A stretch of 64,000 nucleotides of DNA, from contig CM060734.1 of NCBI GenBank assembly GCA_030704615.1, forward strand, positions 62,620,001 through 62,684,000. Direction: 5' to 3'. The notes under the pieces were generated by a model. That model searched no databases and was not told where the DNA came from. It saw only the letters and a program-made list of their open reading frames with translations. Shown here in pieces: positions 11,598 through 56,256 of the stretch; position 1 is the stretch's first letter; the number at the start of each line of letters is the position of its first letter. Source of the DNA: Takakia lepidozioides (lineage: Eukaryota > Plantae > Bryophyta). A program made the position numbers and the translations under genes.

Positions 11598-12144
11598 GTA
11601 AATCTGGACTAAAGTTTGGTCCAGAAATAAGGAGAAATATCTGAATATGTATTTTTAAATCATTTAAATAAATTTAAATGGATCATTTTAAATATAAATA
11701 TATAAATAATTGTTTGTCTATTAATATATAATATGAGCAATAAAAAATATTATTCTAGCGACGACCGAAGGTCGAGAGCTAGTTTAGCGTAGAGGAGGAA
11801 TAGCCACATCATCGTCGCCACGTTTCGTAGCCACCTGTCGTTGCCACGTTTTGTACGTCGTCAATTTCTTTGGGCCCTGCCCAGTCTGCCCGAAAATAAC
11901 TGGGAAAAAAACCCGGATAGATGATGCCCCCGCGTCCTTGATCGCGTTTACAAGGTTCTTGGAAGAGTCAGCTTGGTCTTACGTTGTGTTTCAATCTCTT
12001 TCTGCTCAACGGCACCGTGGTGGTTCTCACAGACCAATCTGGCATTACCTGACTACAGACACAAGCAGCACACAGAATGTGAGACCTTTGACCAATGGTA
12101 CGTGAAGGGGTGACGCTCACCAAGGTCACGTTCGTTTCTGCTCT

Positions 12145-12530
12145 CAGCGGCGTGTGCCAGCATAGGTGCCCTGGAAAAGGGAAAACATGTCCAAGCTGAC
12201 ATTATGAAAGCTAGAATTGCACCAGATATCATTCTAGAGGCTGCCCTTGTTGCCATCTATGCCAAGTGCGGGAGCATGAAGGAGGCCCGTCGAGTTTTCG
12301 TCAATATGGCTGGACGAGATGTGGTTTCATGGAGTGCGATGATTGATGGATATGCTCAGCAAGGGTGTGGTCAGGAGGCCTTGGAGACCTATGAGCAAAT
12401 GATATGGGAAGGGTGGGTACCTGACAAAGTCACATTCACTTCCGTTCTTGATGCATGTGTCAGCCTAGCAGACCTGGAAAAGGGCAAAAAGATCCATGCT
12501 GATATTATCAAAGCCAGAATTGAGCCACCC
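12145..12530 (+). pseudogene. PLS-class PPR fragment
   Basis: ALVAIYAKCGSMKEARRVFVNMAGRDVVSWSAMIDGYAQQGCGQEALETYEQM...PDKVTFTSVLDAC; truncated on both sides. Confidence 0.85.
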
Positions 12531-13187
12531 GGCATCCTTGAGCGCGGAGGGGTTTCACGCAATGTGGTGATGGCACCCTCTTCTTCGACCTATTTCAGCC
12601 TGTTTTTTCCTCTCATCAGACTCGGCCCTGAGATGCCTGTTATCATAATCAGCCCTAAATTTTCATGTTGAATTCTGCAAGTTAGCTAGTTGACTAAACC
12701 TTTGATAGTTTGGAGTGACTGACATGATACTGCCAATGTGACAACAGGAAAGTATCCAGAAACAGGTAACAGAGACGAGAAGCTGTGGAATGAATACTTT
12801 TATGACCCCTATTAATGGTGGGACAATCGAGGTAAAAAGGTAAATGCCTGTTGGATTATAGAGAGTAGCAGATGCAATTGAGCATAGGAACTAGTGTGAT
12901 AAGTTGAGTTGGGTGTTTCCTAGAACAAATCTAGGCTGTCATTGTCAGCTGCTAGCAGCAAAGCAAGGATGTATGCATGATTTGTACATAGGCATGGATA
13001 GTTGAAGGAGCAGGGATAGAGTGTGGGTCCAAACTCATCCAACAGGGCCGGACTTCAAGCTCCAGATGACCTATGACTGTGGATCAATAGCTACATCAAC
13101 TAACTAGCGCAACATAGAGAGTGGAGTCTTAACATTCAGTGACAAGCTGCCATCACACCCCAACGATTCATCAGCTCCTGACAGCGG

Positions 13188-16100
13188 GTGTTGCACATAT
13201 ATTACATGAAAGGTCTGGAAGCTGGAAAGCAGGTGCACACTCACATTATCCAAAGTGGATTCACGCCAAGTGTTTTTCTCCTTAACACCCTTGTCAACAT
13301 GTATGTGTTAAGTGCGGGACCATCATGGATGCTCACCAAGTGTTCAACCGAATGCCTACACAATCGATTTTTGATCACGTGGCAGGATTACCAAGCATGG
13401 GTGTGGTATGAATGCTTTGGAGACCTATGAGCAAATGCTGCACGAAAGGATGAAGCCCAACCACATCACATTTGTTTGTGTTTGCAATGTGTGTGCAAGC
13501 CTGGGAGCTCTGGAAAAGGGGAAAGAGGTCCGTGGTGACATCGTCAAAGTTGGAATTGTACTAGATGTCATTCTGAACACTGCCCTGGTGGACATGTATG
13601 CCAAATGTGGGTGCATTGAGGATGCGAAGGGAGTTTTCAACGCTATGGCTGAACAAGATGTGGTGTCGTGGCACACGATGCTTGCAGGATATGCACAGCA
13701 GGGACGTCGGATTGTGGCTTTGGAGACCTATGATCAAATGATGTGGGCAGGGGTGAAGGCCAACCACATCACGTTTGTGTGCATTTGCAATGCGTGTGCA
13801 AGCCTTGCAGCCCTTGAAAAGGGCAAAGAGGTCCATGGTTGCATCGCGAAAGCTGCAATTGTACCAGATGCAAAGGGAGTTTTCAACAATATGGCTTAAC
13901 AAGATGTTGTATCGTGGCACGCGATGCTTGCAGGGTATGCACAACAGGGACATGGGATGGTGGCTTTGGAGACCTATGATCAAATGATGGGGGAAGGGGT
14001 GAAGCCCAAACACATCATGTTTGTGTGTGATTGCAATGCATGTGCAAGCCTGGCGGCCCTGGAAAAGGGCAAAGAGGTCCATGGTTGCATCGCGAAAGCT
14101 AGAATTGTACCAGATGTCATTCTGACCGATACCCTCGTGGACATGTCTGCCAAATGTGGGAGGCATTTCAGCAGATTCAGATACGTTTGTCTATCTCTTG
14201 CTTAAGTGCATCAAGATGAAAGGTCTGGAAGCTGGAAAGCAGGTGCACATTCCCATTATCCGAACAAGGATGCGAAGGGAGTTTTCAACACTATGGCTGA
14301 ACAAGATGTGGTGTCATGGCATGCAATGCTTGCAGGGTAAGCACAACAGGGACGTGGGTTGGTGGCTTTGGAGACCTAGCTATGATCAAATGATGGGGGA
14401 AGGGGTGAAGCCTAACCACATCACGTTTGTGTGTGATTGCAATGCTTGTGCAAGTCTGGCAGCCCTGGAAAAGGGCAAAGAGGTCCATGGTGACATCGTC
14501 AAATCTGGAATTGTACCAGATGTCATTCTGAACTCTTCCCTCGTGGACATGTATGCAAATGTGGGAGGCATTTCAGCAGATTCAGATACGTTTGTCTGTC
14601 TCTTGCTTAAGTGTATCAAGATGAAAGGTCTGGAAGCTGGAAAGCAGGTGCATGCGAAGGGAGTTTTTGACACTATGGCTGAACAAGATGTGGTGTCGTG
14701 GCACGCGATGCTTGCAGGGTATGCACAGCAGGGACGTGGGATGGTGGCTTTGGAGACCTATGATCAAATGATGGGGGAAGGGATGAAGCCCAACCACATC
14801 ACGTTTGTGTGCATTTGCAATGCATGTGCAAGCCTGGCAGCCCTGGAAAAGGGCAAAGAGGTGCATGGCTGCATCGTGAAAGCTGGAATTGTACCACATG
14901 TCATTCTGAACTCTACCCTCGTGGACATGTATACCAAATGTGGGAGGCATTTCAGCAGATTCAGACACGTTTGTTTGTCTCTTGCTTAAGTGCATCAAGA
15001 TGAAAGGTCTGGAAACTGGAAAGCAGGTGAACACACACATTATCCAAAGTGGATTCATGCCAAGGATGCGAAGGGACTTCTCAACACTATGGCTGAACAA
15101 GATGTGGTGTCATGGCACGCGATGCTTGCAGGGTATGCACAACAGGGACGTGGGTTGGTGGCTTTGGAGACCTATGATCAAATGATGGGGGAAGGGATGA
15201 AGCCTAACCACATCACGTTTGTGTGTGATTGCAATGTTTGTGCAAGTCTGGCAGCCCTGGAAAATGGCAAAGAGGTCCATGGTGACATTGTCAAATCTGG
15301 AATTGTACCAGATGTCATTCTGAACTCTTCCCTCGTGGACATGTATGCCAAATGTGGGAGGCATTTCAGCAAATTCAGATACGTTTGTCTGTCTCTTGCT
15401 TAAGTGTATCAAGATGAAAGGTCTGGAAGCTGGAAAGCAGGTGCACACTCACATTATCCAAAGTGGATTCACGTAGTTTGCACAATTAACACGGTTTGCA
15501 AACTTGAGTGGAAGGGGTGATGCCCGACCACATCACGTCTCTGTGCATTTGCAATGCGTCTACAAGCCTGGTAGCTATGGAAAAGGGCGAAGAGGTGCAT
15601 GGCGACATTGTCAGAGCTGCAATTGTACCAAATGTCATTATTGTGGACATGTATGAAGAGAGTGTTCGACAGTATGGCTGAACGAGATGTGGTGTCGTGG
15701 AGTGCGATGATTGCAGGATATGCACAGCAAGGGCGCGGCATAGAGGCTTTGGAGACCTATGAGCAAATGATGTGCGAAGGGGTGAAGCCCAACCACATAA
15801 CGTTTGTTTGCATTTGCAATGTGTGTGCAAGCCTGGCAGCTCTGGAAAAGTGCAAAGAGGTCCATGGTAGCATCATCAAATCTGGAATTGTACCCGATGT
15901 CATTCTGAACACTGCTCTGGTGAATGCATGCATCGTGGATCCAAAGGGACAGTATGGCTGAACGAGATGTTCGTGGAACGCGATGCTTGCAGGGTATGCA
16001 TAGCAGGGGCGCGGGATGGAGGCTTTGGAGACCTATGAGCAGATGATGGGGGAAGGGGTGAAGCCCGACCACATCACGTTTGTGTGCGTTTGCAGTGCAT

Positions 16101-16566
16101 GTGCAAGCCTAGTAGCCCTGGAAGGGCAAAGAGGTGCATGGTTGCATCGCCAAAGCTAGAATTGTACCAGATGTGGTTCTGAACAATACCCTTGTGGACA
16201 TATATGCCAAATGTGGGAGCATTGAGGATGCGGAGGGGGTGTTCCATAGTATGGCTGAACGAGATTTGGTGTCATGGAACGCCATGCTTGCAGGATATGC
16301 ACAGCAAGGGCGCGGGATGAGCATTGCAGACCTATGAGCAAATGATGGGGGAAGGGGTGAAGCCCGACCACATCACCTTTATATGTGTTCTCTCTACATG
16401 CAGCCACACTGGCCTACTGAATGAAGGAAGACGCTACTTCGATTCCTTGAGTCAAGATCATGGTGTCACTCCGACAGTAAAGCACTTTGGCTGCATGGTG
16501 GAACTTCTTGGACGTGTGGGACAACTGGATGAGGCAGTGGACTTGATTAATAAAATGCGACACAAG
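13188..16566 (+). pseudogene. PLS-class PPR (RNA-editing-factor type) pseudogene with internal tandem duplications
   Basis: Repeated P-L-S motifs (LVDMYAKCG.IEDA..VF..MAE.DVVSW), frameshifts and stops; ends with the L2-S2 region FICVLSTCSHTGLLNEGRRYFDSLSQDHGVTPTVKHFGCMVELLGRVGQLDEAVDLINKM. Confidence 0.9.
14161..15470 (+). repeat. About 400-bp tandem duplication (three full units plus a partial one) within the PPR pseudogene
   Basis: The junction tgggaggcatttcagcagattcagatacgtttgtc recurs at about 14157, 14562, 14941 and 15355. Confidence 0.85.
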
Positions 16567-16949
16567 TGCCCATGTGGACTGGTACAGTGACCTGCACCAC
16601 ATTATAACGGGCCGGAGGTGGCCCTTTGTCCCTTATCTCTATTCCGTAAAACTTCCTGTCACAATTACATGAGGTTCTTCTTGAGAGTTTCCTTGTGGAG
16701 AGTATCCTTCTGAGCCGGTTTGCTTTCAAGCAAATCTTTTTCCTCACTCTCCTTCTTGATACTCTCCATTGGCTTCCATAAGCTCTAGTTGGAAAAGCTC
16801 AGACCCCAACTTACCATGACAAACCCTCAATATGCTATTAACTTAAAGAGCAGTGACCATGGGAACTCCCATTATACTGGGAAGCTGTAGAGCATACATA
16901 ATAGATTCTGTATGGTTGAACAAACAGGCAGGACACAGAAAAATGACAG

Positions 16950-17252
16950 CATGGATTTCCTTAATTCTGGGATGCAACTTGTCATCTACAACGAAGGTGT
17001 GCACACCCTGTTGCCGACCCCAATGCAGCAGCGACTTGGCTCCTTTCTAACCCCTTTGACCTTCATCATTCTTCTCACCTTTGCAGTATCATCCCACCTG
17101 TCAGCTGCAGCATAGATGTTTGATAACAACACTTAAGTAGTGGCGTTCTATTCATCCCACTTGAGGATGGATGTTCTCGCACGTTCAGCCATCCCCACTT
17201 TGAAATGGATTCTGCAGGCACCTAGCAAGGCCTTCCACACCACAACATCTGG
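16950..17252 (-). pseudogene. PPR E1/E2/E+ extension, inverted relative to its PLS array
   Basis: Minus strand reads PDVVVWKALLGACRIHFKVGMAERA...VLLSNIYAAADRWDDTAKVRRMMKVKGVRKEP...VHTFVVDDKLHPRIKEIHA with stops and a frameshift; no DYW domain seen. Confidence 0.88.
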
Positions 17253-18139
17253 ATTTAGTTAGGTGAAGTAAGATTTCCAGAGATTATTACACCCATTCTT
17301 CAGAAAGTTTGTCAGTACTTTTGTCGGTCCTAATAGCTGATGAAATTAGTGAAGAGGTCTAGCTGCTAGTTATGTCTCTTCAAGATGTTGAGAGTCCAAA
17401 TTTGGTGACACTCCTTACATGTGCTCTTTTATTCATACTTTCCACTTTAGACTTTGCTGGCATTGCAGTGGTAAGCAGACTGAATTTCATGTTGAACCTA
17501 AAATTCTGCTGGAACTTAATGATGGCAGCCAGTGATTGTTGTATGGTCTTTCTACAACAAAAATTATTGGGTCATGGGGATGTGTAGTGACCTGTGCAGC
17601 ACTCCACTGTACAAAATGCTAATGTCCAGCATAAAACAAAAAAAACATGTGTATAATTTCAAATAATATGGAAAAACAAAATGTTAATGCGGACAGACAG
17701 AATCCAGATAAAATATAAACCAAGTGAAAATAAAGATGAAAAAGATACCATATAAACAACATTTATAAACAAAATCTACTTGTTGTATCAAAACATGTCA
17801 GAGTCATTACATGTCAGACTCATTACACTGGTCAAATTATAATCCGATGAAACAAGCCTCGAATTGCAATGGGCTCTCTTGCTTTGGCAAAACGTAAGAG
17901 GATGGGAAACTACGACCACATTTTCTCCCTTGACTTCAACGTGATGCGTAGTCTATCTCATAAAACTTGAATATAGCCCATCTATCTGGACGTTGTTCTC
18001 AGAAGTCGTTGCTAGTAGTGCGGAGCAACGCGAAGCCCTAGTGTATAAACTTCAGGAGAAAAAGCAGTTTCTATTTGGCTCATAAAGCAAGTTCCACTAT
18101 TCACTCGACGTTTAGTAAGAGTTGAATGAGATACCAACA

Positions 18140-18662: not shown

Positions 18663-18965
18663 CTTCTAGAAGGAGGGCTGAACTCCGTTAATACAAGACG
18701 ATGTCGGCCGACGTACTTATGATGAAAATATTTTGAGGAAAGTCATTTCCAAAAATCACGATATTTTAACAAGGTTGGAGGGACCATTTTCAAATCTGTA
18801 TTCTTCCGTTGTTCCGAAGGTTTTCGTCAGCAGAAGATGGAAGAAGTCCCTGAAATGTTGTCTCGAGAATCATTGATATGGTGATGACCTCACAAAAAAT
18901 ATCCTACAATATTACGCCAACCAACAATGTCTTGTGCGACCGAAGTTCAGCTGTACTTCTCGAAG
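18663..18965. ncRNA. Long imperfect hairpin (candidate hpRNA/miRNA-like precursor)
   Basis: cttctagaaggagggctgaactccgttaatacaagac pairs with gtcttgtgcgaccgaagttcagctgtacttctcgaag, and pairing continues inward. Confidence 0.5.
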
Positions 18966-19207
18966 AATTGGTGATCTTGCAGACTTTCAGTGAATCGCGA
19001 AGATGATGAATTACTCGTATGTTCTTCAAAGCATAATGTCCAAGTAACTGACCCTGGAGTAAGATGCTGAAAGTATCCAATTGGGGAGTAAGTATGTTGC
19101 TCGTATGCTTCTGGAGAGTGGCTCGATGGCGAGTACGTTGATGGAGAGAGTGACGTTTTCTGCGAAATCTTCAAGGAAATAGTGTCGGGTGACCAGTCGA
19201 GGTTCAT
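18947..19207 (-). CDS. Exon of unknown TE cargo protein with YSP repeats and the YSPI.YF...PGS motif
   Basis: STYSPSSHSPEAYEQHTYSPIGYFQHLTPGSVTWTLCFEEH resembles the motif found twice at about 46.05-46.42 kb. Confidence 0.45.
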   Translation of the reverse strand: MNLDWSPDTISLKISQKTSLSPSTYSPSSHSPEAYEQHTYSPIGYFQHLTPGSVTWTLCFEEHTSNSSSSRFTESLQDHQFFEKYS

Positions 19208-19316
19208 CAGTGACGGGCTGTGGTACTTCTAACGATTTACTGTAAAGCACTCGTAAACCGATCACCAACTAAATAATCTCCAACTAACTAACCACCAACT
19301 AACTGATTGGAGCTGT

Positions 19317-19810
19317 CACAAGCAATGTCAAAAATCCTATTTACTGCTAGGTATTTGATGCTATTGTTGTTCCTGTAGGTGAATTGTATAGTAGTTATTT
19401 TGTTATTTCCATGGGAATAGTATCAGGTCCCCAGAGATTGTCATGTTCAGATTCTCGTATCAGCCACGGCCCACCATCATTGACCAATATAAAACCATCA
19501 GCTGCATGTCAGCTGAGAACTAGATCTTCGATTCATTGTATGCGACTCCAGAGAAACACCCTAGCCCACAAGTAGTTGGCCAGCAGCTTGAGATATTTCT
19601 CCGGGCTGTGATTGAATGAACTGGAGATTTCATTCTTAGCTGATGGTTTCATGTAGGTGATGCCTGATTCCGATTTCAGAATATGGCAGTCTCAGTGAAC
19701 CTGATGTTGTTGGAATGGGAATAGCAAAAAGACTCTTATAGAAATCAGCTACATGAACATACGCAGTATCAAGCACCTTGAAGTACATATGATTGTTGAG
19801 ATTGTTTGCA
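19317..19810. ncRNA. Long imperfect hairpin (about 145-nt arms) homologous to 26615-26992
   Basis: Arm 19317-19467 aligns collinearly with the reverse complement of about 19660-19810; an inner stem (tcagctgagaa / ttcttagctga) continues it. Confidence 0.6.
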
Positions 19811-21077
19811 CAGATTGTTAGCGACGGTGTTCCTCCTTTGGCGTCCAGTCCACATGAAAATGACGAGAATGTCGCTGGAGATTGACGTTCAATTGCTGAC
19901 ATTCTGCCTCCTCACTATGCCTGCAGAATCATCACATCTTCAAATGACAGCATTTTCGTTGCTGAATGCGTGAGCATAGAAAAAACATCACTCCGACCAA
20001 TCACATGTGGCACTGTTGAGGTAATATAACACTTTGGCAATCGGTTGGAGAACCAGGATGATGCTGAATTCCACTTTTCGAACCACGAGTGATCGCGCGA
20101 CAGATCTCTGCCTCTACCACCATTGAGAACCCCAAAGAGCCGAGTGCATCCAGATTTCAATCAACCACAATGGTGCCATCAGTTCGTCAGGGAAGGAATT
20201 TCGAAGCCGCCAAAATTACTTCAATCCATTTGAAGAGAGATTTTAACAGAGGTTCATAATCCGCTCAGGAACAAAGGAGACGACCATCGTGGGAGCTTGA
20301 ATTACGAGTTAGGAACCCGAATTGAGTCATAGACGATGATCGTGTCACTTGTTCCCCATCGTAATATGAAAACAACGGAAAAATTCTTCTCCTCCTACCT
20401 CCTCCAGCCTCCAGCCTGATCTGTTATTGCTTAAACTGACAATGAAGTCAACTTGTTTTGATAACATCTGATGGCACTGCTGATCCATGCTAGCTCCACA
20501 AGAGGATATATGAAGGAACCACGCGCGATCGCACGTGATTTCTCTCAAACTTCGATGACTAACATTATAGCCGAAAGGATCTGGCATAACATTGACAGAG
20601 TTAAATAACGTATGTGTGTAATGAACAGCCCGACAATAGTTTAATTCATCAATAACACAGAGTTGCTTCCCAAACAGCTCACACTCAACCCATATGTTCG
20701 AGATCGCCGTCGGTTACCACTGATGGCGGAATTTTGTGCACCCGAGGAGATGGATACAGTGGGAGATTGATGTAAGATATGACCAGACACCTCACTGGTA
20801 GCTGTACTTGATGACCTTAACAAACGTAAAGCCTCGCGGTCTCTCCGCTCAGCCTTACGCTGCCATTCCTCTTTCTTCTCCTGTCGAATTTGATTCTAAA
20901 CTTGACACTGGAATATAACTGTGTGGAGGCAGCACAGAAGGGAATTGTTAAAGAAATACAAAGATCATTGAAATATCATTGATCTCACAAAAGTCATGTG
21001 AAGTCAACATACGTATAAGTACAAATGGAGGTTGAAGTAAAGCTGATGGACTACACACAAAATAGGGCAATGTTAAA

Positions 21078-21870
21078 CTACGTACCCAGATAATCGGGAT
21101 TTTTTTTAGGGGGGTGCCAAACAGAAGCATCCATAAATCTTCCAAACCAGGACCAGTAGACGTGATTTCGATCTATCGGAGGGCCGGAAGATTTGCAGGA
21201 GTTCTTGCCGACGTAATCAACAACGGACTGGGCTCCAATCAAGCTAGAGAGAAAAGACCACAAAGCTTTGGTGAGGTCAACCAAATCCTCCAAATTGCTT
21301 GATTCCTTGAATGTGATGGGGAAGACTCCAGTATTCACTAGGTTTTCGGTTGCCTTGGATGGGTCATCGTCGACCAATAGAATTTGCCCCTGCCTAGCAA
21401 ATTCTTTCCTACTAAATTTTACGAGAATACTCTTAATATCTTTAATAAGATATTTCATTCCAGGCTTAATACGTCCAGCTGTATCTGTGCAATGCTCGGC
21501 AGACCATATGAAACGAAATTGTTTCATAATTTTCGGAGGAACGAAACACCCCATCATCTTGAATACAGTATCCCTCTCAGAGCAAGACCAAATCGCTACA
21601 TAAAAATGAGTCAATGCAAGTCGAAAAAACTCCAGCGCTCCAGGTCTTGGAACCACAAATGGTCTTGCGGGCACCCGAAATTGTTACTTTCCTCAAGTGG
21701 AACCTCTGTTTAAATAACTCACCTCCGGTAGGAGGTGGACTGTAGCAAAGAAGTCCATTGACACTCAGTACCAACAACATGCGTTTGTGTTTCCGGACAC
21801 CACACAGTTCTTGAGTAACAACGTTCTGAACCATCCAAAAGAGCCCATTAGTTTCTGTTATCTGACCCAA
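21078..21870 (-). pseudogene. FCP1-homology / NIF-family HAD (CTD-phosphatase-like) domain; probably part of a spliced gene with upstream exons at about 22.2-23.1 kb
   Basis: LLVLSVNGLL...(frameshift)...VVPRPGALEFFRLALTHFYVAIWSCS...FIWSAEHC...YLIKDI...ILLVDDDPSKATEN..NTGVFP. Confidence 0.8.
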
Positions 21871-23554
21871 AAATTAGATATTTCCCATACATTTTGCAAC
21901 TCAAAAAATGCCACGACATACTTGCGTTTTGTGATTTACCTAGTTTCTATACACTGATTTTCAAATGGAATATTTTGCGAAGGTAATATTTTCAGCATTA
22001 CGACACCCAATTGAGACTTGAGACAAAAAATCACAATCGGGAGTCTATGAGTTTCCTGCAACCATGCGCGATCGCGCGAGGTTACTCTGTGTAAAGTTGT
22101 GTCGACAATGTAAATGATATATGTAATGATTACTAGGAAGCCAGAACCAATAAGACAGAGGACCAAGTGAAGGAGATACTTATTACCTTTGCTAGATTTA
22201 CCCTTCGATTCTGAGGCGGGTTACCACTGGAGGCAGGTGAATGTTAAAGGGATAAGAGAACGCCAGATGCTGTTTTTTCATCGTCGGACACGACCGCTGC
22301 TGATTGCTGTGATCTGTGACGTTTCCTTGACACAGGACCATTCGGAATTATGGGGGGTTTGGATATATGTCGGTCTTGTCGGTGTGCTGACCTCAGTCGA
22401 CGAATGAGTGAGTTCAATAACCTTCTCGCTGACGGTTGGCAGTGGAATTCGGTTTCTTTCTTTCTGCACATCCTAAACCGAATTCAAACGGAAAAAAAGG
22501 GATTACCTTGGAATACAACCCCACAGAAGTTGCCGCTTCACAAGAAGGTCATACGTTGCAGCTTTTCTGGCCTAGAGTAAAGAGAGAAAATTAGAGGATG
22601 AACAGAAACACGGTAACAATAAAACGCATGGATGAAATAGAATTAAATCACCTGACTTCTCAGCAGCTGAGGTGTCCAGCCTCGTGATCCGGGCAGTTCA
22701 GCGATAGTTGCAATCAATTGTTCGGTAGGCTCATGTAGATGCCCCGTGACGGCGTCTGGTGGAAAGTGTTGGGATAAGGACGGAGTTCCAAAGAGGATTC
22801 CCCAAGATAGTGAGAGTCATTTTTCACTATGCATCCAACCTCAGTTAAATCATCGACCCTGCTAACGGTGGATTCACCTTTTGACATTTTGAGCCTCGAA
22901 ACAACATCCGAAACACTGATGGGATCACTCTCCATAACAACAATGGATACTTGAGTAGACAACAAGTTGTCAGGTCCTTGGAAAGCTTCTGGCCTGATCA
23001 TTTCTACATCGTCAACAATATCAGACGATATTGTTTCGCCAATTGGAGATGCATTTGTGGCATGGAGAACATATTGATATGGGCATACCTGCAAATGACA
23101 TATATGTCAACAAAGTTAAGTTGGAAGAACGCGTGACCACGCGAGGTTCCGAAAAGAAATCGATGGACATAAAGGAACAACGAATCCATTGACCGTTACA
23201 TATGGTTTGGCAATATAACAATTTCCATGCAAAGCAAAAGAATATCAGAAGAAAACTGAAACTCCATGGTCTTCACAATCAATTATAAATAGTAAACTGT
23301 GTCCACAGTAGGACGCGAATATTTACTTATCATTTACTCGGAAACCTAGTTATCATTCCTGACGTGATGTGGCGCTGACACGTCGGCCGTCACGTCCGAC
23401 GTGCGTCATGTCACGTCGAATCCGGACGTTTATCCACGTAATTTTTTTTATATTTAACTTTTACGATTTACTTCTACCCTTTGTAATGACATGGCAGCCA
23501 CGGTGTAAAACAGACGTGGCCAATTATTAATATTTATTAATTCTTTTTAAAAAA

Positions 23555-23832
23555 ATGAGTCCGCCTTTATTGGCAGTCGCTTGTACTTTAATATTTTATT
23601 AAATTAAGCGACTGCCAGTATTGGCGGTCGCCCGTAATTTTATTTTTTTAAATGAAGCGACCGCCGAAATTGACGGTCGCCCGTAATTTATTTATTTTTA
23701 AATGAAGCGACCGCCCATATTGGCGGTCGCCCGTAATTTATTTATTTTTAAATGAAGCGACCGCCCAAATTGGCGGTCGTCCGTAATTTATTTATTTATA
23801 AATGAAACGACCGCCCATATTGGCGGTCGCTT
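23555..23832. repeat. Left array of GCGACCGCC-N5/6-GGCGGTCGC palindromes
   Basis: About six units of roughly 50 bp separated by AT-only linkers. Confidence 0.9.
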
Positions 23833-25931: not shown

Positions 25932-26014
25932 ACCATAGTCTCGTAGATATGACATTTTTTGCGGTACAATGGTTCTTTTATGAAGACATAACTCAATTTT
26001 GATCGTGCATGTAA

Positions 26015-43061: not shown

Positions 43062-43543
43062 CAGCTTAGGAATAGTCGTGTGGTGGATAGATCATATCAT
43101 CCTGCCCATTAGGAAATAATTATTAATTCATTGGAAGTTTTTCGCAATGGAATGCAGAAAGGAAAACAGAAGGCGGAGAATGAAGTACCAGCTTTGGCGG
43201 CACTTGCTCCAAGCCGGATGAGGTTTCGCCACCAATTCCCCCGGCGATGGGTCTTTCGCCGTCCGGTATGTTTTTGTCGACCCCTCCTATAAGTAACCTC
43301 GCGCGATCGCCCGTGGTTTTTGAAGCTGCCACCTTGGGCGACGATATCCTCACTCTCTCAAGTCATATTGTTTCTTCATTGTACGCTGTTGTGTGTCGTT
43401 TGTTCTGGTATGTGTCACTTCCTCCGTATTGAGCTCACAGATCTACAAAAAATGTGGGTGATTAGACTTCCGTATAAATTTCGATTGATTTACGAGACTA
43501 TCACAGAGCAATAGGTTATTAGTTCCATTGGTAAAAGATTCTG

Positions 43544-44268: not shown

Positions 44269-44313
44269 TTCTGATGTTATATCAAGTTTGTTATAAATTG
44301 GGTTTTACAAGTG

Positions 44314-45484
44314 TCAGGACAGCTCATAATCTGCAATACTCACGTCAACAGAGTTTTGATCGCCGACCAATGCCCTAGATGCTTGACCATCAACGATGTC
44401 TCTAACTCGTTGGCTTAAACCTTGATATGGTGACATCCGTAATGACATATCCCCCTCCACAGGACTGAATTCCACCCCTGAGTCTATTTCTGAAATCTCC
44501 TTATCGAAGACATCTCTAGAATCAGCGTTATCCTTTACATTGTCTCCCCCCACTTCTTCAGTGGAGGAAGACAGCACAGTTGTCTCGAGATTGTCTCCTT
44601 CACCGGTATTTGTCAGGGCCTGTGAATGGTGGCTTTCTTCTGGTACTACCCTCCCTGCTTGTTCAGCTGGTGGATTTCTGCCTTACTCAATTTGTTCTGT
44701 CTCCTCTTGCAAGTAATTGTTGACGGCATCATCGTGTTGGTAGTCACCATTGTCTTCCTCACCTCCCTCAAGTTCTTCATTTTTGTCCAACGTTTCGTTT
44801 CCGTCACCTTCTTCCTGGTTTTGCTTTGTCTCCAGATCTCTTTGTCCGTCATCTTCATCGTCATCGTTATCGTCATCGTCGTCGTCATTTCCTTCACCAT
44901 TGAGTCTGTGGGTCTCCTGCCCTCCCAATGTGTCATCACCAACCTCGGTTCCGTCCTCGTTCTCCGTATGGATGAGTGTGTAGTTAGCGGCAACCTTATT
45001 CGCGCAGAATTTCTTTTTCAGGTTGTGATTAATATCAAGGACTCGGACGTTCCTAGCCTGCAAAAGATGCCAACCATTGAGTGAATCCCATCTTTACAGC
45101 TGGTTTCATCATTGCCTTGCGAACGCGACGAGATTCCAGAGAAAAGCCAAACGTCTTTTTCGCTCTACCATCCTCCAAGATGAAAACCACCATCATTGGA
45201 TTCTCCACGTCCGACTCCATCTCAACATCTTTAACGTAGCCATAATTAAGCTCCTTCACCTCCGCTCCAATCTTGAAGGAAAACTTCAGTTGGTGGTCAG
45301 GAGGTACACCCACAGGATTTATTCCCCACTCGGAGATCGCCTGGTTAAGAGTATACAAAGCTACGTGGTCTATGCTGAAGTTTGGCGATTTTGTTGAGAT
45401 GAACTCCCCACATATCTCCATGCATACGCCAACCAGGCAATCCGCTGATATGTTTGACTGACCACTGAACATGAAACACAACAT
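44314..45484 (-). pseudogene. Unknown TE cargo protein with a long Asp/Glu-rich tract
   Basis: Collinear ORF pieces 45053-45484, 44683-45063 (GNDDDDDNDDDEDDG...) and 44314-44577. Confidence 0.45.
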
Positions 45485-45959
45485 TATGTTATCTGGATTA
45501 GATATCTCATGGCATTATTTCAAGATTGAGAGGAAAGGCCGAAGTTTGAAACAAATCATAATGTTACGGATATCAGGCCAATATACAAATGGGAATCCCA
45601 CTGGGAAGAAATGGAATTGAAAGAAACTAACTTACAATTAAGCTGGAATATGGTACATTTAATTGTGACTACAATATGGAATAAATGGAATGGAATAAAT
45701 CAAATTCACAATTAAACTGGAAATCTCAAAAAGTGCAGATCATTTAATTGGTTTCAAAAATCATGAAGAATACTTTATTATTCAATAGTGAAGAGTAAAA
45801 ACGGAGACATCGTTGGCGTTTAAATGTACTAACTGAGATGAAGGACTATATCATGGTGATTCAGCACACCCCCAGTGAATCTCTTGAAAACTTCTCGAGT
45901 ACCCAGAAACTGATCCTACTGATTATTGTGGATATTCGGTGGAACCACATGGAGATTCT

Positions 45960-46631
45960 GAACTGGTTCAAGTACACTCCAGTGTGCCCGTGAAGAATCT
46001 TTCCATTTTTGATGATTCCGAATGGTCGGAATTTACAGTTGACGTAGGTGTGTATTGTGCCAAAAATGAGGCCAATGCAGCCGACCCGGGTCTGAGGTGG
46101 CTAAAGTATCATATTGATGAGTATTATGGGGATCCCGGAGTATACCCTGGCGATGAGGGTGTATACTTTGGGGATGCCGGAGTGTACTCTGGGGTTGAGG
46201 GAGTGTACTCTGGTGATACGGGAGTATACTTCCGGGGATCCAGGTGTATAATCTTGAGTATTTGGTGTATACGCAGGGTACATAGCGCAAAAATCATTTG
46301 ATTCCACCGATACTTCAGCTACAGGATCTCCGGAAGACCCTCCACAGTATTGTTCTAGAAAAGAACTTAAAGCTGCTGATCCGGGGGGAACGTCGCAAAA
46401 ATATTCTATTGGTGAATAATTGTCCTGATCGTTTGATTCAGGGGAGTAGGTGTCAGGCTCCTCTGTGGATGGAATTGTAGAAACTGGAGATGATATGACG
46501 TGAACTCCTTTAGAAGGTCCCGTCATAATAACTGCAGCTCCGCATTCACCTTGTGAGGAGGGTGAAAGTGTTGCCTTGTGTCCGGTATGTTCCATCTCCT
46601 TCTTCTCCTTCATCGAACACGAATCCACCAC
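45960..46631 (-). pseudogene. Protein with seven RNA Pol II CTD-like heptads
   Basis: After correcting one extra base near 46229: [48 protein letters not shown]; 21-bp DNA periodicity at about 46124-46271. Confidence 0.7.
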
Positions 46632-48882
46632 ACTGGAAGAATCATCAAGAACTCGTGCTCAGTTACAGACTGTACAGAAGGAGACACGCGAAGAACGCAT
46701 GATTGCGCGTATTTGGTTCACAATTTTCCCTCCAATAACGTAAAATCCGATTGTAAGCAACAACGACGTTGCTAAGCATAGCGAACAGAATCCATATACA
46801 TGACTTTGTTCTTTCAGTCATATAAGAGTATCCTAACATCTATTATCCCAAGAAAACTCTTCTGAGCTGTAGGAACATCAGAACCACGCACGAGTGAGTT
46901 GAGGCACAGATGAACTAATTTCATCCCACTGCGAGAAGTCTACCGGAAGGACTATTAAAGTACATTGAGAACATTGAGGATTATCTAGGTGGGAGTCGTT
47001 TTTATTTATATTTAGAATAAGACTGAAACAAAGAAGTCAAATTTGCGCTATTGCGTAAGGTTTAATAATTGCATAATCCATAAAATTGAAAACGATGAGT
47101 TTACTGACGTACTAATGAATGATTTTTCGACCCCGTACAGTTTGGTATTAGCTACTATTCGTTAGTTCTTCTGTAGGTGACGACTTGCACTGAATGATGC
47201 ACGCGCAATCGCGCGCGCACCTTTAAACCATTCTTGGACATCACATCTTCACTGTCTAATCTGAAACAGTGGTCGACATAATCGATGAACAACCTAAGCG
47301 ATGTTGACGACAAGTAATATTTCAAACTGCCCTGGACTTTTACTATTGTATACTATTGTGTCCACACTGAACACCTCCGCCCATCATACATAAGAGTGAC
47401 CATATAGGAATTATCATATTCTGTGTGCATGAAAAGACAGATAAAGTGCAACGGAAGATTTTAGTTGACATTGTATAATGTGACCTAATGTCTTTTGAAA
47501 CACTTTACAATTTTGAGTATGCACTCAGACATATCATCATATGTGTCATCTAATCATCTGGGTATCAATAGTGTTGTTGTTGGTCGCTAGAATACAAGTA
47601 CCAACCAAATGAAGCACGCGCGATCGCGCGTGCTTCTTCAGGGCATTCTTTCGCATCACATCTTCAATTTCTCATCCAATGCAGTAAACTACGAAGTCAA
47701 ATTAGCATGATTGTGCAAGGTTCAATAATTGCATAATCCTTAAAATTGAAAACACTGAGTTTATTGTCCTACTATTCGTTAGTGCTCCTATAGGTGACGA
47801 CTTTTACTGAAATAAGCACGCGCGATCGCGCGTGTTTCTTCAGACCATTCCCTTGCTGAAAGTGCTTGCTGGCCTCGCTCCAAGTCCTAACCAAACCATG
47901 TTTCGCAATACTATCACTGAAATAAACACGGGCGATCGCGCGAGGTTTCTCTACGGCTTACGAAATCACTAGGAATCCCTATTTCGAGAGGCACGTAATG
48001 CAGATCATGGAAATAATGTGCATAACCGAATCGAGCCAAAAACACAGTTTGGTATCCAGAACTCTACATGGTAAAATGAGTTCACGCGCGATCGCGTGTG
48101 AATGGACTGTGTCATGGTACCTATACTGAGGCCTACACCATAGGCTGCAAAACCTAAATAGTTGCCAGCTGTACCTACGAACCCTATGAAATCGGAATTT
48201 CTCATGTCTCGAATCCGGAGTCGTTCCTCAAGGAAAGCGTACATATCCCGAAATCTTTCACAATTCCCAATCCTTCTATCGACCATCCTACCTCTTTAAC
48301 CCTGGAATCAATCCAAAAATCAAAACAAGTAATCAAAACAATGAAAACAAACAATAATTCGAACAAACAATAATTCGCTCAAACAAGCAAACAATCAAGC
48401 AAACAATGAATCAAGCATGCAACTTCTACCTTCCTGCAATCTCTGCAGCCCACGGAAGAATCCTCATTGCATGCACGAAGAAGACGGGAAAATTTTTTAC
48501 CTGCTTGATGCCATTTCAGGCAAGGAACCTCCCTGCAGGGCTGGATGAGCTCTCTCGCTCGGGTGCGCACAACAGCTTCCGGGATAGCGTACTCTTTTGT
48601 TTTGCCCTCCTTTCACTCTGTCACACTCCCCCGCACACAGTGAATTGCTCAAACCCACACTCACTCCAACTCACGCTCCCTCGATCTCTCACTCTCTCGC
48701 TTCCTCGATCTCCACCTCTCTACCTCTTTCGCTAAGTCACTCTCTCTCGCACCTCTTCCTTGAGTCCAAAATTGAACAGTGCTTCCGCATGTATCAAATG
48801 AATGCAAAAGGAGACTCCTCCTTATATGTCTTACCACGTGTGATCTCAACTGTTGGCGTTATGTCGCATCCGACGGTTTGTG

Positions 48883-49305
48883 GTCTCATGGAATGCACTG
48901 ACTGCAGGATATGCTCAGCATGGGTGTGGTAGGGAGGCTTTGGAGACTTACGAGCAAATGATACATGAAGAGTTGATTCCCAACCAGGTCACGTTTGTCT
49001 GTGTTCTCAATGCTTGTGCCAGCCTGGCAGCCCTGAAAAAGGGTAAAGAGGTCCATGCTCACCTTGTAAACTCCGGAATTGTGCCAAATATCATCCTCGA
49101 CACTGCCTTGGTTGACATTTATGCTAAATGTGGGAGCATAAAGGATGCACGTCGAGTGTTTGACAATATGGCTCAACGAAATGTGGTCTCATGGAATGCA
49201 ATGATCGCATGATTTGCTCAACATGGGTGTGGTAGGGAGGCTTTGGAGACCTACGAAGTAATGGTACAGGATGGTGTGACACCCGACCGGGTCACATTCC
49301 TCTCT
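48883..49305 (+). pseudogene. PLS-class PPR fragment inside the element
   Basis: VVSWNALTAGYAQHGCGREALETYEQM...ALVDIYAKCGSIKDARRVFDNMAQRNVVSWNAMIA*. Confidence 0.85.
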
Positions 49306-50786
49306 TATGGATGAATGAAAGGCGGGATGTTTCCCAACGGTTCGCTGAGGACCCCTAAATTTATGCAGGTACAATCAATGATGCGACATGACTGTCAGTA
49401 ATGAATGGACTCCACTAGTTTGTCCAGAGCGTTACGGCGCGGCAATCCGACGCCTTCATAAAGCGAACACCCTGGAATTATTGCGGGTTCCCATGACGGC
49501 GCTTATCCATGAGGGGAGTTGAATCATCCACTATTGCAGTCATCTCATCCAGTATACGTCTGTTTCATCCGCGAAGGCTCTTATTTCATCCAATGATAAA
49601 ATATTATTCATAGGTTCAATAATGAGGCATTGGGACGTGCATCTGGGATTTGATTGGTCTCACGTTTTCTCTACCTATACCTCATCTACGGCTCCACGTT
49701 CATTGCGGCTACTTAATGTCACCTTGCCATAGATGGCCGCCGGCTCATCACAATGGCCTTAAGAGGCGGTCACTTTCGTCGCCGACTATTCTTTCTCTTG
49801 TATCATTAATTCAACATTGGATTTGCTGCTTCTCTGGTGCTTTGGATGTCAGATTCCAGATCTCGAATCAGTTAGTTATTCGCATTAGCCGCAATAACTT
49901 ATGGACCCATTAATGTTCGGAGGATTTCAGACTCCTACTTGAATTTATGCTCTGGATGACACATAATAGCCACTAGATTACACGAAAGAGCATATCTAGG
50001 GCGACAATTTGTCGATCCATGACACTCCAAACACACCTCTATAATGTGAACACGTCGACCTCATACTGTTTGACAATCCGTATAAGCGCCTGCCATTTTT
50101 TCCCTCTCAGTTGCTCTGGCTCGCTAATCTTCAGGACTGTCTGTTTTACGTTCATTCTTCCTTTTGTACTCCTGTCAATATTGAGAACCTCTCCACTTCA
50201 TCTGGGTTTCTCTTCTGTCTCTCTACTCCTCTGTTCTCATCCACTGTCTGCAAAGATCTTACATACACACCCGACCGTTTTATGTACTTCGAATGATCAC
50301 TCGCACTACAGCTGTTTCGTTCATCCATGTTTTTATTTATTCATCCATTTTCTTACTTGTCATCCGAAACTCGTCTACCATTATTCATTCGTCCTTCATT
50401 TCCTCCATTTGAACCACGCACGAACGCCCGTCGATGTGGTTCTATTTCTGTTATGGAGTCGTAGACAATGTTGTGCATTCGGGTCGTAGCTTTAGCAGAT
50501 CCTATAATTTTCTACAAATTTCTGTTTCGACCAATAGAGACCTACGTTCTACATTCTAATACATAATCCGAGAGTCCGAGTTCTATTTTCAATTTCCAAA
50601 TCATTATAACCCTAAACGCGGGCGATCGCTCGAGGTTCTTTTTCATCTTCATCCTCAGTTTTTTTAAACAACCTTCAGTAACTTATTGTCTCATTCTTTC
50701 TTAGTGTCCATCGATATAGTGCCGAATCATTAATCACCAGAATCTCTACTGTAGGATACACGCGCGATCGCGCGAGGTTCGTGGAA

Positions 50787-53700
50787 ATGTCGTTGTTCCA
50801 AACTGGTCAACAAGTTTTCCTCACTCTTCAGGGTTGGAACTCTATCGTCGCAACAACATAATGTCTCAACGTCACTGGTTGCGGAAGTTGCCATGGACGA
50901 CAGCTAAACGGGTCCACAATATCTGTTGTTATAGTGTCTTGCGATCCGACACATTCTTCTGTGTCGTTGCCATATCCGCACATGGATGCGGACTCTTTGG
51001 GAGAAGCAATTGGAACACCTGTCGTTTGGGATGTGGTGCAAATTCAAAAAGATACTGGGACTGACACCAACACCAACAATGAGGTTCCTTAGTTCTCGGA
51101 GGTCGCATTGACATCTGCGGCTGATTACCATCCAAAATTCAATGAACAAATTGAATCTGGCATGTCAAGGCTGTCTCCGAATAACGATGTTGCTATGGGT
51201 AGAGACAGTTGGAGAAATAAACTGTGTATTTCTCCTTGGAGATGAACAAAGTGCTTTGTACGAGGGCAGAATTCAAGCATGTCATCCTGACGAGGTGATA
51301 CTTTGTGAGAAAGTTGGAGAACATCACGTCGGGGTGCTCGTTACAAGGATTTTGAATGGCGGTTCGACCAATCTCATGTGTCTCGTGAACTGGCCATTGA
51401 CGCAGACTCGGTTCATTGATAGTGGCAGGACATTGTCACATGAGCTTCATAGATTCATCAATAGTCGGGAACAAACAGATATTGGTCATAACGAGAAAGG
51501 TGTGAAAAAAGCAGCATACCGGCATTTCAACAGACCAAAAAAAGATCCGAAAAAAGACGATTCCAAAAAGATAAATACTCGCCTCTCTATGCAGGCAGTT
51601 CGAGAAGTCAACTACAAACAATGTTGCAATTTACAGTGTTGCCAATATTTCGATTGGAGAAAAACACTCGCTATCCAGACCGCTTATTGGGGATCCTCTT
51701 ACGACGAACGGAGAGAGCTCGGTTTTGATGTTCCCAAAAGACTTCATCAAATCGACGGGGTTTCGACAAAGGCCTATATAACCATTGAGGGCGTTGATGT
51801 GTGTGAGACAGCTTGGTGGACAATTCACGGAATCGGTCGTTCAACCTACATGGAATACAAAAAACTAAGCAGAGAGGGTGTGGTTACACCGTTGCACGGG
51901 AATTCCGGAGTGAAACGGCCTCGTCCACAAACACGACAAGCTGAAGGAAACTTAATGTCAATTATAAACGGAAATTCCGATCTCATGCCTCATAAGACCC
52001 GTTGTATTGGAGACGGATGGAGAGATACTCTTCGAGTTCTCCCACCTGAATTGAACTGGAAAAAACTTCGCGAAGAGTGTAATGAGGTCAATTTTTTTTT
52101 TTTTTACCACTTTTCGAATTCTATATTTTTGGGGACCTTCCCTGTTTTGCTTCCACGCAATGTATCAGACCTCTCACTATTAAAGCTCGGGTGATCGCGC
52201 GAGGTTCATATCCCCCTGTCTGTCTTGCAGGCGAATAAAATATGTGGATTGAAGCCTATCTCCCAGGCAGCCGTCAGCAGAATCAGACAACGGATTTTTC
52301 CCAATGTCGAGGTTAGAAAAAATGGTAGCACGTTTGTCAAATGCACAGACTGTGAGATGCTCAAAGAACTAATCAAGAAGTCGGTCAAACGTAGCGATGA
52401 GCAGGCCTCGCACAAGAAAGCACTTGATAAGCACCTCAGGCTTCAGGAGTCTTGCAGGAGACTCTATCACAGCTGGAGGAATGAATTAGCTATGATGTCG
52501 TCCGAGTTCCTCTGCATCATTCATGACAAGGTGGATCATCGGAAAACAGCTATTCCAAGGTTGCAGACGACGAACAAGATGGTCTCTGGCTTAGGTCAGC
52601 TTCCAATCTTGCTAACCGGAATGGTCACACATGGCCACAGGGACGGAGCCTACGGACAGTACTCTCTGGACTTCTGGCCGGGAGACCCGAACTTCACGAT
52701 TGGCTCTCTAGCAAGATGCCTCCGCTAACTAGAGAAGCCCTCTTGCCGCGAAAGTCGTAACATCTTTGACCACCCACCTCAGAATTCCTTTTTCGAATCT
52801 CTCATGAAGGGTAAATCGAGGTGTCTTGACGTCCTGAAACCTTTCGGCGATAAGGAGAAGAAAAAAAGAAAAGTCACACTTCCGCGAAGACTCTACCTGC
52901 AGTTGGACAACTGCGTGAAGGAAAACAAAAATAGGTGGATGCTGGCTTTTCTGTCGCTCCTAACTGCAAGAGGAGTGTTTGAGGAGATTCAGATGGGATT
53001 TCTCATGGTTGGCCATACCCATGAGGACATCGACGGATTCTTCAATTATTTATCGAAAAAGCTGAAGAAAAACAACACCTACGTTCTCTCCGATCTTATG
53101 AGGTTTTTTATAATATCTCAAGATCTGCAATTTATTCCTCAAATCATTCAAGAGGTGCCAGATTTCAAGGCGTATGTGGACGGTTGCATTCTCGATGGAA
53201 AAGATGCTTTAGTTGGGCAAACATAAATGCATGTATTTCGATTCTATGTAGATGAAGATGGTTGGCCTGTCATGAAGTTTAAGAAGTTTGCTACTGATTC
53301 TGAGTGGCTCCCCAAAAAAAAGTGCGGTGAAGATGTAGAAGTCGAATCCCGATGGATCTCCAAAGTTCCCTATGGCAGTACAACCCAGGGCTGTAAAAAA
53401 AACACCAATTTGGGGTGTGGGAGATGACTTATCCGAAAAACAGTCTTTTATCAAAACTGAAATTAAAAAATACTGGGAGTTCTGGAAGAAGGGGATGATG
53501 CTTGACGATCATTATCGTGACATCATGATACAGTATGATCAATACTGGGAAGCAATCCTTGCAGAACTTGATCTTCCCATTCCTGGAGAATCACGACATT
53601 CAATCGCGCTTAAAGGGGGTTTTTGGCCCTCAACCAAATGGGCTGTCAACCACCACAGAGCCGGAATCCATACACCCGCAGAGGATGATCTGTCGGAAGA

Positions 53701-54170
53701 AGATAAAGTCATGGAGCCGTAGCCCCCGATGTGATAGACCGAAGCAGCCTCTAAATCCGTTCAAGGACATTGAGAACGGATTCTTCGTCTTGGCTCGACC
53801 AGTAGATACTGCGACGTTTCCAGTTTGGATGGGGATGGCAATAACGGATGTGGTCCGCGACAGAGGATCCAGGAATTTTAAGAAGGTTCACGTCCAATAA
53901 TGGAGACCCAAGAAAGGAGGAAGCCCTTCCGATTTGGACAGGTACAAATATTGTTCATCCAAAGTTTGGGAGTTCAATCCAGATGATCCCCCTCAATGGA
54001 TTCACATTAACTCTGTCGTTTGGACAATGTCCGTCAGAAAAAACACGACACGTAATAGCTCCAAGAAAATTACCGCAGTGGAAGCGGAGAAAGCACGAGC
54101 AAATTTGGATGAGGCCAATCAACAGTCAGACAATGAAAACAATGCAACCTCGGGCAGAGAACAAGGTTGA
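50787..54170 (+). pseudogene. Sola1-like DDD transposase, intron 52087-52230, disrupted
   Basis: Cys clusters (CCNLQCC; CTDC...H), CIIHDKVD, LYLQLDNCVKENKN, FLMVGHTHEDIDGFF; TAA stops at 52726 and 53224 plus frameshifts; superfamily assigned from motif recall only. Confidence 0.75.
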
Positions 54171-54889
54171 CAAGGACATATTGTGGAGGTTCACTTCTCG
54201 GCATGTTTTCAAGAATAAAACTAATGTTTTACCTCCACTCTCCATTTGTTTCTCTTCACGTGTTCAAATATTAATCTACCTTCTTTGCCAGCCATCAGTT
54301 TTTTTCCGGACCTCATCTCTGTAATGTTTCAGGAACCTCGAGTGATCATCCGGAGTTCCTAGTTTTTCTGATGTCACTGCTTGCTTCTCTTTGCAGTTCC
54401 TCTCTCACATTACACCCATTTCTTTTGGTTCTCTGGTTCTCACCAAAGTGTCTTCTCCTCAAAAGATTCGCACATCTCCTTCATTCTCGGTCCACATGGT
54501 CGTATTGTTGGGCTCAATATGATTGGTCTAAAAAATGTCCTGAGTATAAACCGCGTGACAATTTGTGAAAGTTGTTGCTTCAATGGATAAGCTTACTCGC
54601 GGTTTACTGCTTATGAATATTGTGAATATTGTGAATCTTCTCCCATTACTCGTCAGTAGCTTTCTGTAAGTCTGGCTTCAAGTACAGAGTTACATTTCCT
54701 TTACTGCCTTTTCGGACTATCTTAAGATTCTTCTCAATTTTCTTTGTCACTAATCAGTCCTGAACCTCGCTTTGCCACCCGTTATTCCGTGTCATCTCAG
54801 GTCAATTTATCTTGGGTCTGTTTATCTTATTAGGACCTTCTAAAGACAATACTTCTGGGGCTTTCAGTCCTTACATTGTCCTCACCTTA

Positions 54890-55775
54890 AACCATATACC
54901 CTAAACCTAATTCGAATGTTTGATGCGCATTCTTCAAGGGTTACAAGGTTGGGCATAATAGAATGGCCCTTGGGATATTTAATTCAAGTCTAATTTCTTA
55001 GGTGACAAGTCACTTGTACACTTTCCCAGTTTTTTTGGTCCATTCATACCCAGTAGTATGTTTACTACACTACTCAACTCCGTACCCTAAAACCTAATTC
55101 CAATGTCTGATGCCTATTTAATTTATTGCTTCCAGTTTTGGGTGCGGTTGAAGTGGAGGGGATATTTCCTGAATTGTTGTACGACCTCCACATAAAGACT
55201 CACATTCCATAATTGTTTGTCCATTTATAGTTCTCTAAACCCTAAACCCTAAGCCCTTAAATGTAACTCCATTGTTTGATGCGCATTCTTCATAGATTAG
55301 ATACAATCTGTGGTTGGGAAATTTTATTCCCTAAACCCTAAATCATAGGTGACAAGTCATCTGTACCCTTCCCAATATTTTCTTTTCCATTCATACCAAG
55401 TACTATGGTTAGTACCCTCGCAAACTATATACCCTAAAACCTAATTTCAATGTTTGATGCTTATTTATTTATTACTTCCAATTTTGGGTACGGTCGAAGT
55501 GGCGGGGATAATATTTCATGAATTGTTCTACGTATGGGTAAAGACTCAAACTCCAGTTTTTCTAAATTCCTAAACCCTAAACCAAACTCCACTGTTTGAT
55601 TCACATTCCTCATAGAAATTTGGATACAATCTGTGGTTGGGATATTTCATTAACAAATTTTCATAGGTGCCAAGTCATCTGTACACTTTCCCATATTTTA
55701 TTTTCCATTCATACCAAATACTATGTTTCAATGTACCCTAGCAAACTCTATAACCTAAAACCTAATTCCAGCTTG
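54890..55775. repeat. Subterminal tandem repeat (about 345-bp A+B dimers, roughly 2.5 copies) headed by telomere-like CCCTAAA motifs
   Basis: accctaaa(a)cctaatt..aatgtttgatgc recurs at about 54898, 55084, 55240, 55431, 55570 and 55755. Confidence 0.8.
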
Positions 55776-56256
55776 GTTCAATGACTTTATAGCTTAATCT
55801 ATATGACACTCTTCCACAATATTTGGTTGTCATTTGAACCTTTTGGAATGATCCCTAAATATTTTGAAACATAATTCACATGTTTCATTGAAATCCAACC
55901 TTATTAAAATTCAACGTTTTAATCCATCAATTGAAAACTCGCAATACATTGGTTTATGGTACTACTATACTGTAAGCATGGTATGGATGTTTACTTTTCA
56001 TTTGTATATTATCTTTTTGAATCATCTGATTATGTCATACATCTGTCAATTTATTAATAACTTCATTCAATCGATCTTATCTTTATAATTTTCTGATGCA
56101 AAGTACGTCATTGGACTTACCATTCGATGTTACATGAATGGGATTGTGTAACTTCACAAGTTAAATGACTCAATATTCCACGATATTATTATTATTACCT
56201 GAATTAATTTTATATATTAAGTTTGGTCCGGATTTAAGCCAAAAGTCCGGAATTAC

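Follow-up and report, generated by a model that had tools for sequence, protein, structure and literature searches.

A large Sola1-like transposon with nested elements in a LINE of the moss Takakia lepidozioides

The window analysed here is a stretch of 64,000 nt from the moss Takakia lepidozioides (CM060734.1:62,620,001-62,684,000), and all coordinates are positions within this whole stretch. It holds a Sola-type insertion at 11585-56269 (44,685 bp, nested elements included) that divides a long interspersed nuclear element (LINE). The arrangement is very probably the outcome of a single cut-and-paste insertion of a large, AAC-ended Sola transposon into open reading frame (ORF) 2 of an L1-like LINE, with duplication of the sequence CAAA. 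The core of the transposon measures about 17-21.5 kb, and the rest of its length is contributed by a nested hAT element and by a block of pentatricopeptide repeat (PPR) gene fragments that is probably a CACTA derivative. An earlier note on the same DNA had described a cargo-laden Sola-like element of 44.7 kb at 11598-56256; in this study, its ends, target site, class and length were re-examined.

Termini and target site duplication

The element is bounded by terminal inverted repeats of 26 bp that match at 22 positions, the left one (11585-11610, plus strand) beginning AACAC and the right one (56244-56269, minus strand) beginning AACCC when read inward, which gives GGGTT at the plus-strand end. 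Directly outside them stand two copies of CAAA on the plus strand, at 11581-11584 and 56270-56273. When the two ends were aligned locally without constraint, the alignment started exactly at 11585/56269, with a score of 53.5 against 47.5 for the best of 200 shuffles. The CAAA target site duplication (TSD) is exact, cannot be extended in either direction and flanks the outer edges of the inverted repeats; since CAAA is not self-complementary, it is not explicable as an artefact of the inverted ends.

The true ends thus lie 13 bp further out on each side than first placed. The earlier note had taken inverted repeats of 11/13 bases, each accompanied by a second GGAC motif, as the ends; these letters are present, but the boundaries drawn from them give an inverted match of only 13/26. 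It had also assumed a palindromic target site, with a TSD that might be TTAA, TA or absent. Its palindrome, ATTTTAAG, belongs to the inverted end and is not a target site, and TTAA likewise lies inside the inverted end; TTAA resembled a TSD because it is self-complementary and so placed, a palindrome within an inverted end being able to mimic one. The GT...AC termini of that reading give way to AACAC...GGGTT.

Public contigs (runs X1/X2) were used for a read comparison that covered the left end. Another copy of the LINE matched up to 11584 and was followed by 24 unmatched letters, and a single-copy contig, whose 1.7-kb flank is a different one, started to match at 11584, ran to 11740 and then diverged. 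Summed contig depth, which is not a copy number, rose from 65-220 to 1,500-5,700 in the bin at 11584; the left end is therefore a repeat, recurring in these contigs with another flank and at high depth. Scanning metagenomes for the shared end motif returned 22 matches, which are attributed to chance because none extends beyond the pattern. An alternative model based on the AWWT target preference (11604-56250, AAAT/AATT) was rejected on the inverted-end score, the reading frame and the contig breakpoints.

The host LINE and the rejoined junction

Both parts of the host LINE are on the minus strand. The 5' part (56274-58196) holds the reverse transcriptase domain and downstream ORF2, and the 3' part (10110-11584) holds the zf-RVT domain and an A-rich tail. 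In profile searches RVT_1 (E 6e-25) mapped to 57381-58196 and zf-RVT (E 2e-8) to the region immediately left of 11.6 kb, and the A-rich tail was found near 10110-10140, in agreement with the earlier description of two halves on one strand, in the right domain order, with the poly-A on the zf-RVT half. When the rejoined halves were compared by tblastx with three unrelated LINEs, the offset shifted across the junction by 30, 106 and 30 nt; because the shift is so small, the halves are taken to form one element, without a real gap or overlap between them, and the claim that one LINE had been split was upheld.

The reading frame distinguishes the two placements of the ends. Joined at the 11585/56269 ends, the LINE frame is open over 110 codons before the junction and about 218 after it. 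Joined at the 11598/56256 ends, it does run in frame into the zf-RVT ORF, as had been stated, but meets a stop 15 codons upstream of AFYAIS. Similarly, an alignment to a further LINE (L025) crosses the junction (query 109-319, junction near 121) only with the 11585/56269 join, whereas with the 11598/56256 join it begins only at query 194 and does not reach across.

Three points weigh against this placement. The pairing of the two ends is seen in this one copy; the TSD, CAAA/TTTG, departs from the AWWT target preference; and the support from L025 is modest, the upstream LINE piece alone scoring no higher than shuffles against distant relatives. The competing placement, an element at 11598-56256 that duplicated TTAA at a palindromic site, such as Sola3, piggyBac and Kolobok elements prefer, is largely refuted: TTAA does stand on both sides, the 13 bases that follow it match in inverted orientation at 11 positions and the zf-RVT ORF is entered in frame, but the inverted match runs 13 bp further outward, the stop and the one-sided L025 alignment contradict the join, the contigs switch partner at 11584 and not at 11597, and the transposase motifs are of the Sola1-1_Ec32 type.

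Transposase and classification

A Sola1-type DDD transposase (DUF7869, E 2e-34) is encoded at 51142-54130 on the plus strand, with an intron near 52090-52231. It is broken by stops at 52726 and 53224 and by frameshifts near 53340 and 53720. The motifs that can be recognised are a CCxxxCC cluster, CxxC, IHDK, LQLDNCVKENKN and GHTHEDID. Compared by eye, its three acidic motifs (IHDK, QLDN and HEDID) line up with those of Sola1-1_Ec32 from Ectocarpus, and the motifs match that element and not Sola2-1_Ec32. A search for the transposase in viral contigs gave no match.

The description of the element as Sola-like was borne out by the DUF7869 match, the 4-bp TSD and the inverted ends. According to the summaries in PMC10741241 and PMC9033089, Sola elements make 4-bp TSDs, have terminal inverted repeats of 11-1124 bp and in some cases exceed 15 kb. 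The DDD transposase, the 4-bp TSD and the inverted repeats of 26 bp with 22 matches are in keeping with the superfamily, and the AAC...GTT termini together with a TSD ending in A are in keeping with the Sola1-1_Ec32 lineage. The motif comparison favours Sola1; as the AWWT target cited for Sola1 is not seen here, the element is filed as Sola superfamily, Sola1-like, of an AAC-ended lineage. For Sola1-1_Ec32, which is classed as Sola-1, the target is described only by the bias of its TSD towards a final A.

Between the transposase and the right end lies a subterminal tandem (54884-55860, plus strand) of units of about 350 bp rich in telomere-like AACCCTA, with 18 matches to this motif in 2 kb. 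A similar AACCCTA run occurs at about 5.9-6.1 kb of locus L002, upstream of its transposase. Loci L029 and L030 each contain two different Sola-type transposases adjoining one another, tail to tail in L030.

Accessory cassette

The core also holds an accessory cassette, mainly on the minus strand, which lies on both sides of the nested hAT (23345-40223, minus strand). Three NIF/FCP1-like phosphatase domains were detected on this strand, two to the right of the hAT (41069-41575, E 0.001, lacking the N-terminal motif; 40309-40815, E 9e-8) and one to its left (21081-21873, E 2e-8, frameshifted, its DxD motif reading LSVN); their catalytic motifs are degenerate. At locus L031, a NIF homolog (E 2e-12) is found 7 kb upstream of a related transposase and in the same orientation. 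About seven heptads of the YTPxSP type, resembling the C-terminal domain (CTD) of RNA polymerase II (Pol II), are encoded at 46050-46275 on the minus strand.

A further piece, at 41580-43420, is on the plus strand, the strand of the transposase and opposite to the rest of the accessory gene. Inspection of motifs suggested a ParB-like exon (GGQH) and a methyltransferase-like exon, the intron between them holding three palindromes, and in addition a candidate for the N-terminal NIF motif. Both labels, ParB and methyltransferase, draw on these motifs and on the layout published for algae, and they are putative. Weighing against them, neither identity was recovered in Pfam, PHROGs, PADLOC, NCBIfam or PDB or by single-sequence folding. 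Single-sequence AlphaFold models of the two pieces reached pLDDT values of 34-42, and the weak Foldseek rows are noise. An Atlas search of the ParB-like piece gave weak ParB-like leads, none of them significant; word-index homolog searches with the ParB-like and zf-RVT pieces found no match, a result that is uninformative given the length limits of these searches.

The orientation of this piece is probably due to an in-place inversion within one minus-strand accessory gene. The frames abut head to head at about 41580, which leaves no room for promoters; the first NIF domain lacks its first motif, and a look-alike of that motif stands at the far end of the plus-strand piece; and the Ectocarpus accessory gene runs opposite to the transposase (PMC12477816). 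These observations speak against the view that the ParB- and methyltransferase-like piece is a separate plus-strand gene in its native orientation, a view that is distinctly less probable than the inversion. In its favour, the presumed breakpoints show neither an inverted repeat nor a palindrome, and Pfam gives the candidate N-terminal NIF motif no significant score.

Broken frames at 19950-20700 (minus strand) recall, by eye, a Ulp1/C48 SUMO protease, and the one piece of them that was scanned had no Pfam match. A short Ser/Pro/Tyr-rich ORF with one heptad-like motif, YSPSS, is located at the far end of the cassette (18950-19228, minus strand). An Rfam scan returned only a U5 small nuclear RNA gene outside the element (4605-4721, minus strand, 73.8 bits), apparently in an intron of a host gene.

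The GATC-centred palindrome and a possible role of the cassette

An 18-bp palindrome, CACG-N3-GATC-N3-CGTG, is dispersed over 20084-52203, where it is confined to 20084-23128 and 42117-52186. There are 18 sites at up to five mismatches, 12 of them at up to three, and none in any of the shuffles, the hAT, the PPR block or the flanks. The sites are located in introns and between genes and are unlike the termini. Because palindromes and NIF domains are present on both sides of the hAT, the two halves of the core belong to one element. In another sample, two loci whose transposases are related, L002 and L031, have a GATC-centred 18-mer that differs from this one, present 15 and 7 times respectively; shuffles yielded no more than one copy. 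As a point on the other side, neither of the two palindromes tested was found in L029, L030, L032 or L035.

The observed/expected (o/e) CpG ratio is about 0.8 in the core and 0.41 in the flanks. This weaker depletion fits protection from methylation and also a younger age, and age may explain it because the hAT is also undepleted.

In an active family, the ParB-like domain may bind the family palindrome in promoters and introns and tether the CTD-like and phosphatase-like modules there, so that the element would be kept transcribed and shielded from silencing. We consider this proposal to be about evenly poised. Self-binding and self-modification have been put forward, as a prediction, for algal elements in bioRxiv 10.1101/2025.02.11.637652 and PMC12477816. 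An improbable, though not negligible, alternative is that both the palindromes and the accessory ORFs are inert. The former would be internal transposase-binding sites or remnants of a small repeat, and the phosphatase-like domains would be captured host fragments. That every ORF is broken here, that the NIF catalytic motifs are degenerate and that the ParB fold is unconfirmed would all suit inert remnants. They would sit less easily with a NIF homolog at the same place and in the same orientation in a related element of another organism (L031), with palindromes that differ from the termini and occupy introns and intergenic positions, and with relatives that keep an 18-bp GATC-centred design while its arms differ.

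Nested elements and the length of the insertion

The hAT measures 16,879 bp and is flanked by an 8-bp TSD, CTCGGAAA, with inverted ends matching at 9 of 11 positions. Its transposase, at 35.5-37.9 kb, has DUF659 and hAT dimerisation domains, as expected of a hAT, and the earlier report of a nested hAT was confirmed by all of these features. Within it are kinase-like and RING-like fragments (24437-25928 and 30589-32681), 50-53-bp arrays of a CpG-rich inverted motif, GCGACCGCC/GGCGGTCGC (23561-23854, 33160-34558 and 38546-40051), and three copies of a unit of about 1 kb made of 120-bp repeats (27.6-30.0 kb). In the Sola core, a fold-back of 500 nt at 19300-19830 (z = -10) is 76-80% like hairpins inside the hAT (26015-27003) and has no Rfam match.

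The PPR-fragment block (11755-18020, about 6.3 kb) is probably a nested Pack-CACTA remnant, judging from its edges and composition. PLS-type PPR pieces, 75-92% alike and tandemly re-duplicated, lie at 12.1-16.5 kb, and a piece of the E domain in inverted orientation lies at 16.95-17.26 kb. PPR fragments of this type point to an early-diverging land plant as the source of the DNA. A CACTAC-type right end is present at 18020, and its inner 11 bases recur inverted at 11755; TCGTYGCYA motifs are common to both edges, and the same short motif is found three more times at 11812-11855. The CpG o/e of the block is 0.46, against about 0.8 in the core, it lacks palindromes, and its contig depth exceeds that of the Sola end by a factor of up to 25. 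On the opposing side, it has neither a left CACTA end nor a surrounding TSD, for which reason the assignment is given as probable. At 16540-17260 the PPR E domain is divided between the strands, with the first half on plus and the remainder on minus; this is a second in-place inversion. Outside the element, at 63488-64000 (plus strand), is the start of a PLS-type PPR gene that is 70-78% like the captured pieces.

The insertion also holds a GC-rich stretch with an acidic ORF at 43450-45500, unclassified and possibly another insert, and a second PPR fragment at 48844-49300 (plus strand). No convincing pair of ends with a TSD came to light when the surroundings of the PPR block, of the stretch at 43.4-45.5 kb and of the second PPR fragment were searched.

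Without the hAT, the length of the element is 27,798 bp, and without the hAT and the PPR block it is 21,532 bp. Removal of two more doubtful stretches of 2 kb leaves about 17.4 kb, which places the core at about 17-21.5 kb. The hAT and the probable PPR block account for half of the total length, and the size is mostly the result of nesting in a dead copy. The earlier figure of about 27.8 kb without the hAT was arithmetically right, but it still includes the probable second nested element; the statement that the element is far larger than typical Sola elements was overstated, as Sola elements above 15 kb exist and the 21.5 kb of Sola1-1_Ec32 equals the size of the core.

We think it unlikely that 27.8 or 44.7 kb moved as one unit, with the PPR block as cargo captured by the Sola element and the hAT already inside. 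The missing end pair and TSD of the PPR block would be compatible with such a unit, and fixed nested insertions are reported in giant Ectocarpus elements that are still mobile (PMC12477816). Against it are the CACTAC-type right end of the block and its matching edge motifs, its host-like CpG depletion and want of palindromes, its contig depth far above that of the Sola end, and a related left end that shares only 11584-11740 before diverging.

Discussion

The locus records a single cut-and-paste insertion into the LINE ORF2, made through a staggered cut of 4 bp. The core comprises a plus-strand DDD transposase and an accessory cassette facing away from it, with NIF domains, CTD-like heptads and, putatively, ParB and methyltransferase domains. 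Inside the insertion are also the 16.9-kb hAT and, probably, a 6.3-kb PPR-carrying CACTA derivative, and all the genes have decayed to the broken parts seen now.

The closest described counterpart is Sola1-1_Ec32, reported in 2025 from Ectocarpus. As described in PMC12477816, this element is 21,549 bp long, its termini read AACCG-CGGTT, its 4-bp TSD tends to end in A, and an accessory gene opposite the transposase encodes ParB and N4C/N6A methyltransferase domains; its best match is Sola1-1_PPa of Physcomitrella. Measured against this description, the Takakia element shares the TSD ending in A, the AAC...GTT-type termini, the QxDNxxxENKN and GHTH motifs and a core of about 21.5 kb, and, like the giant elements of Ectocarpus, it harbours nested transposable elements. 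It differs in its inverted ends, 26 bp here and 282 bp there, and in that everything is broken in the Takakia copy; the three NIF/FCP1-like domains, the heptads of CTD type and the dispersed palindrome centred on GATC are additions to the design as given in that description. With Sola1 of Physcomitrella (Bao et al. 2009), as represented by the summaries in PMC10741241 and PMC9033089, it has in common the moss host, the DDD transposase, the 4-bp TSD and, for some elements, a length above 15 kb, whereas the AWWT preference cited for Sola1 does not hold for it.

The Plavaka elements of Bostrychia (bioRxiv 10.1101/2025.02.11.637652) are likewise large DNA transposons (17-19 kb) with a ParB-like accessory gene, and inverted repeats adjacent to that gene have been proposed as its binding sites. 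They are unlike the present element in having an EnSpm/CACTA transposase and tandem arrays, where a Sola transposase and dispersed palindromes are found here, and in the partners of the ParB-like gene, which are 2-oxoglutarate (2OG)-oxygenase, SET and adenine-methylase domains instead of NIF domains.

Pack-CACTA and Pack-MULE elements are carriers of gene fragments. The scrambled, re-duplicated and inverted PPR pieces near CACTA-like end motifs resemble their contents; unlike Pack-CACTA, which has CACTA termini on both sides and a 2-3-bp TSD, the PPR block is without a left CACTA end and a TSD, and the assignment is provisional.

A more far-reaching scheme, which we regard as doubtful, is that giant Sola elements of land plants encode a self-addressing anti-silencing protein, combining a ParB-like reader of a family-specific GATC-centred palindrome with a Pol II CTD mimic and CTD-phosphatase-like decoys, and that this copy also moved as a 28-45-kb composite carrying pieces of PPR editing factors and silencing hairpins.

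The element is a land-plant variant of a known giant-Sola design, that published for the Sola1 of Ectocarpus. This locus contributes precise ends with their TSD, connects the element to the AAC-ended lineage and shows that nesting makes up most of the great length; the size itself, in a dead copy, is of little weight. The ends and TSD read from the clean junction in the LINE (AAC...GTT, CAAA) tie the land-plant family to the giant Sola1 of brown algae and can be used for annotation across the genome. If the accessory protein reads its own palindrome, the family would possess a sequence-specific system against silencing that is encoded by the transposon itself and assembled from parts of bacterial type and parts related to the Pol II CTD.

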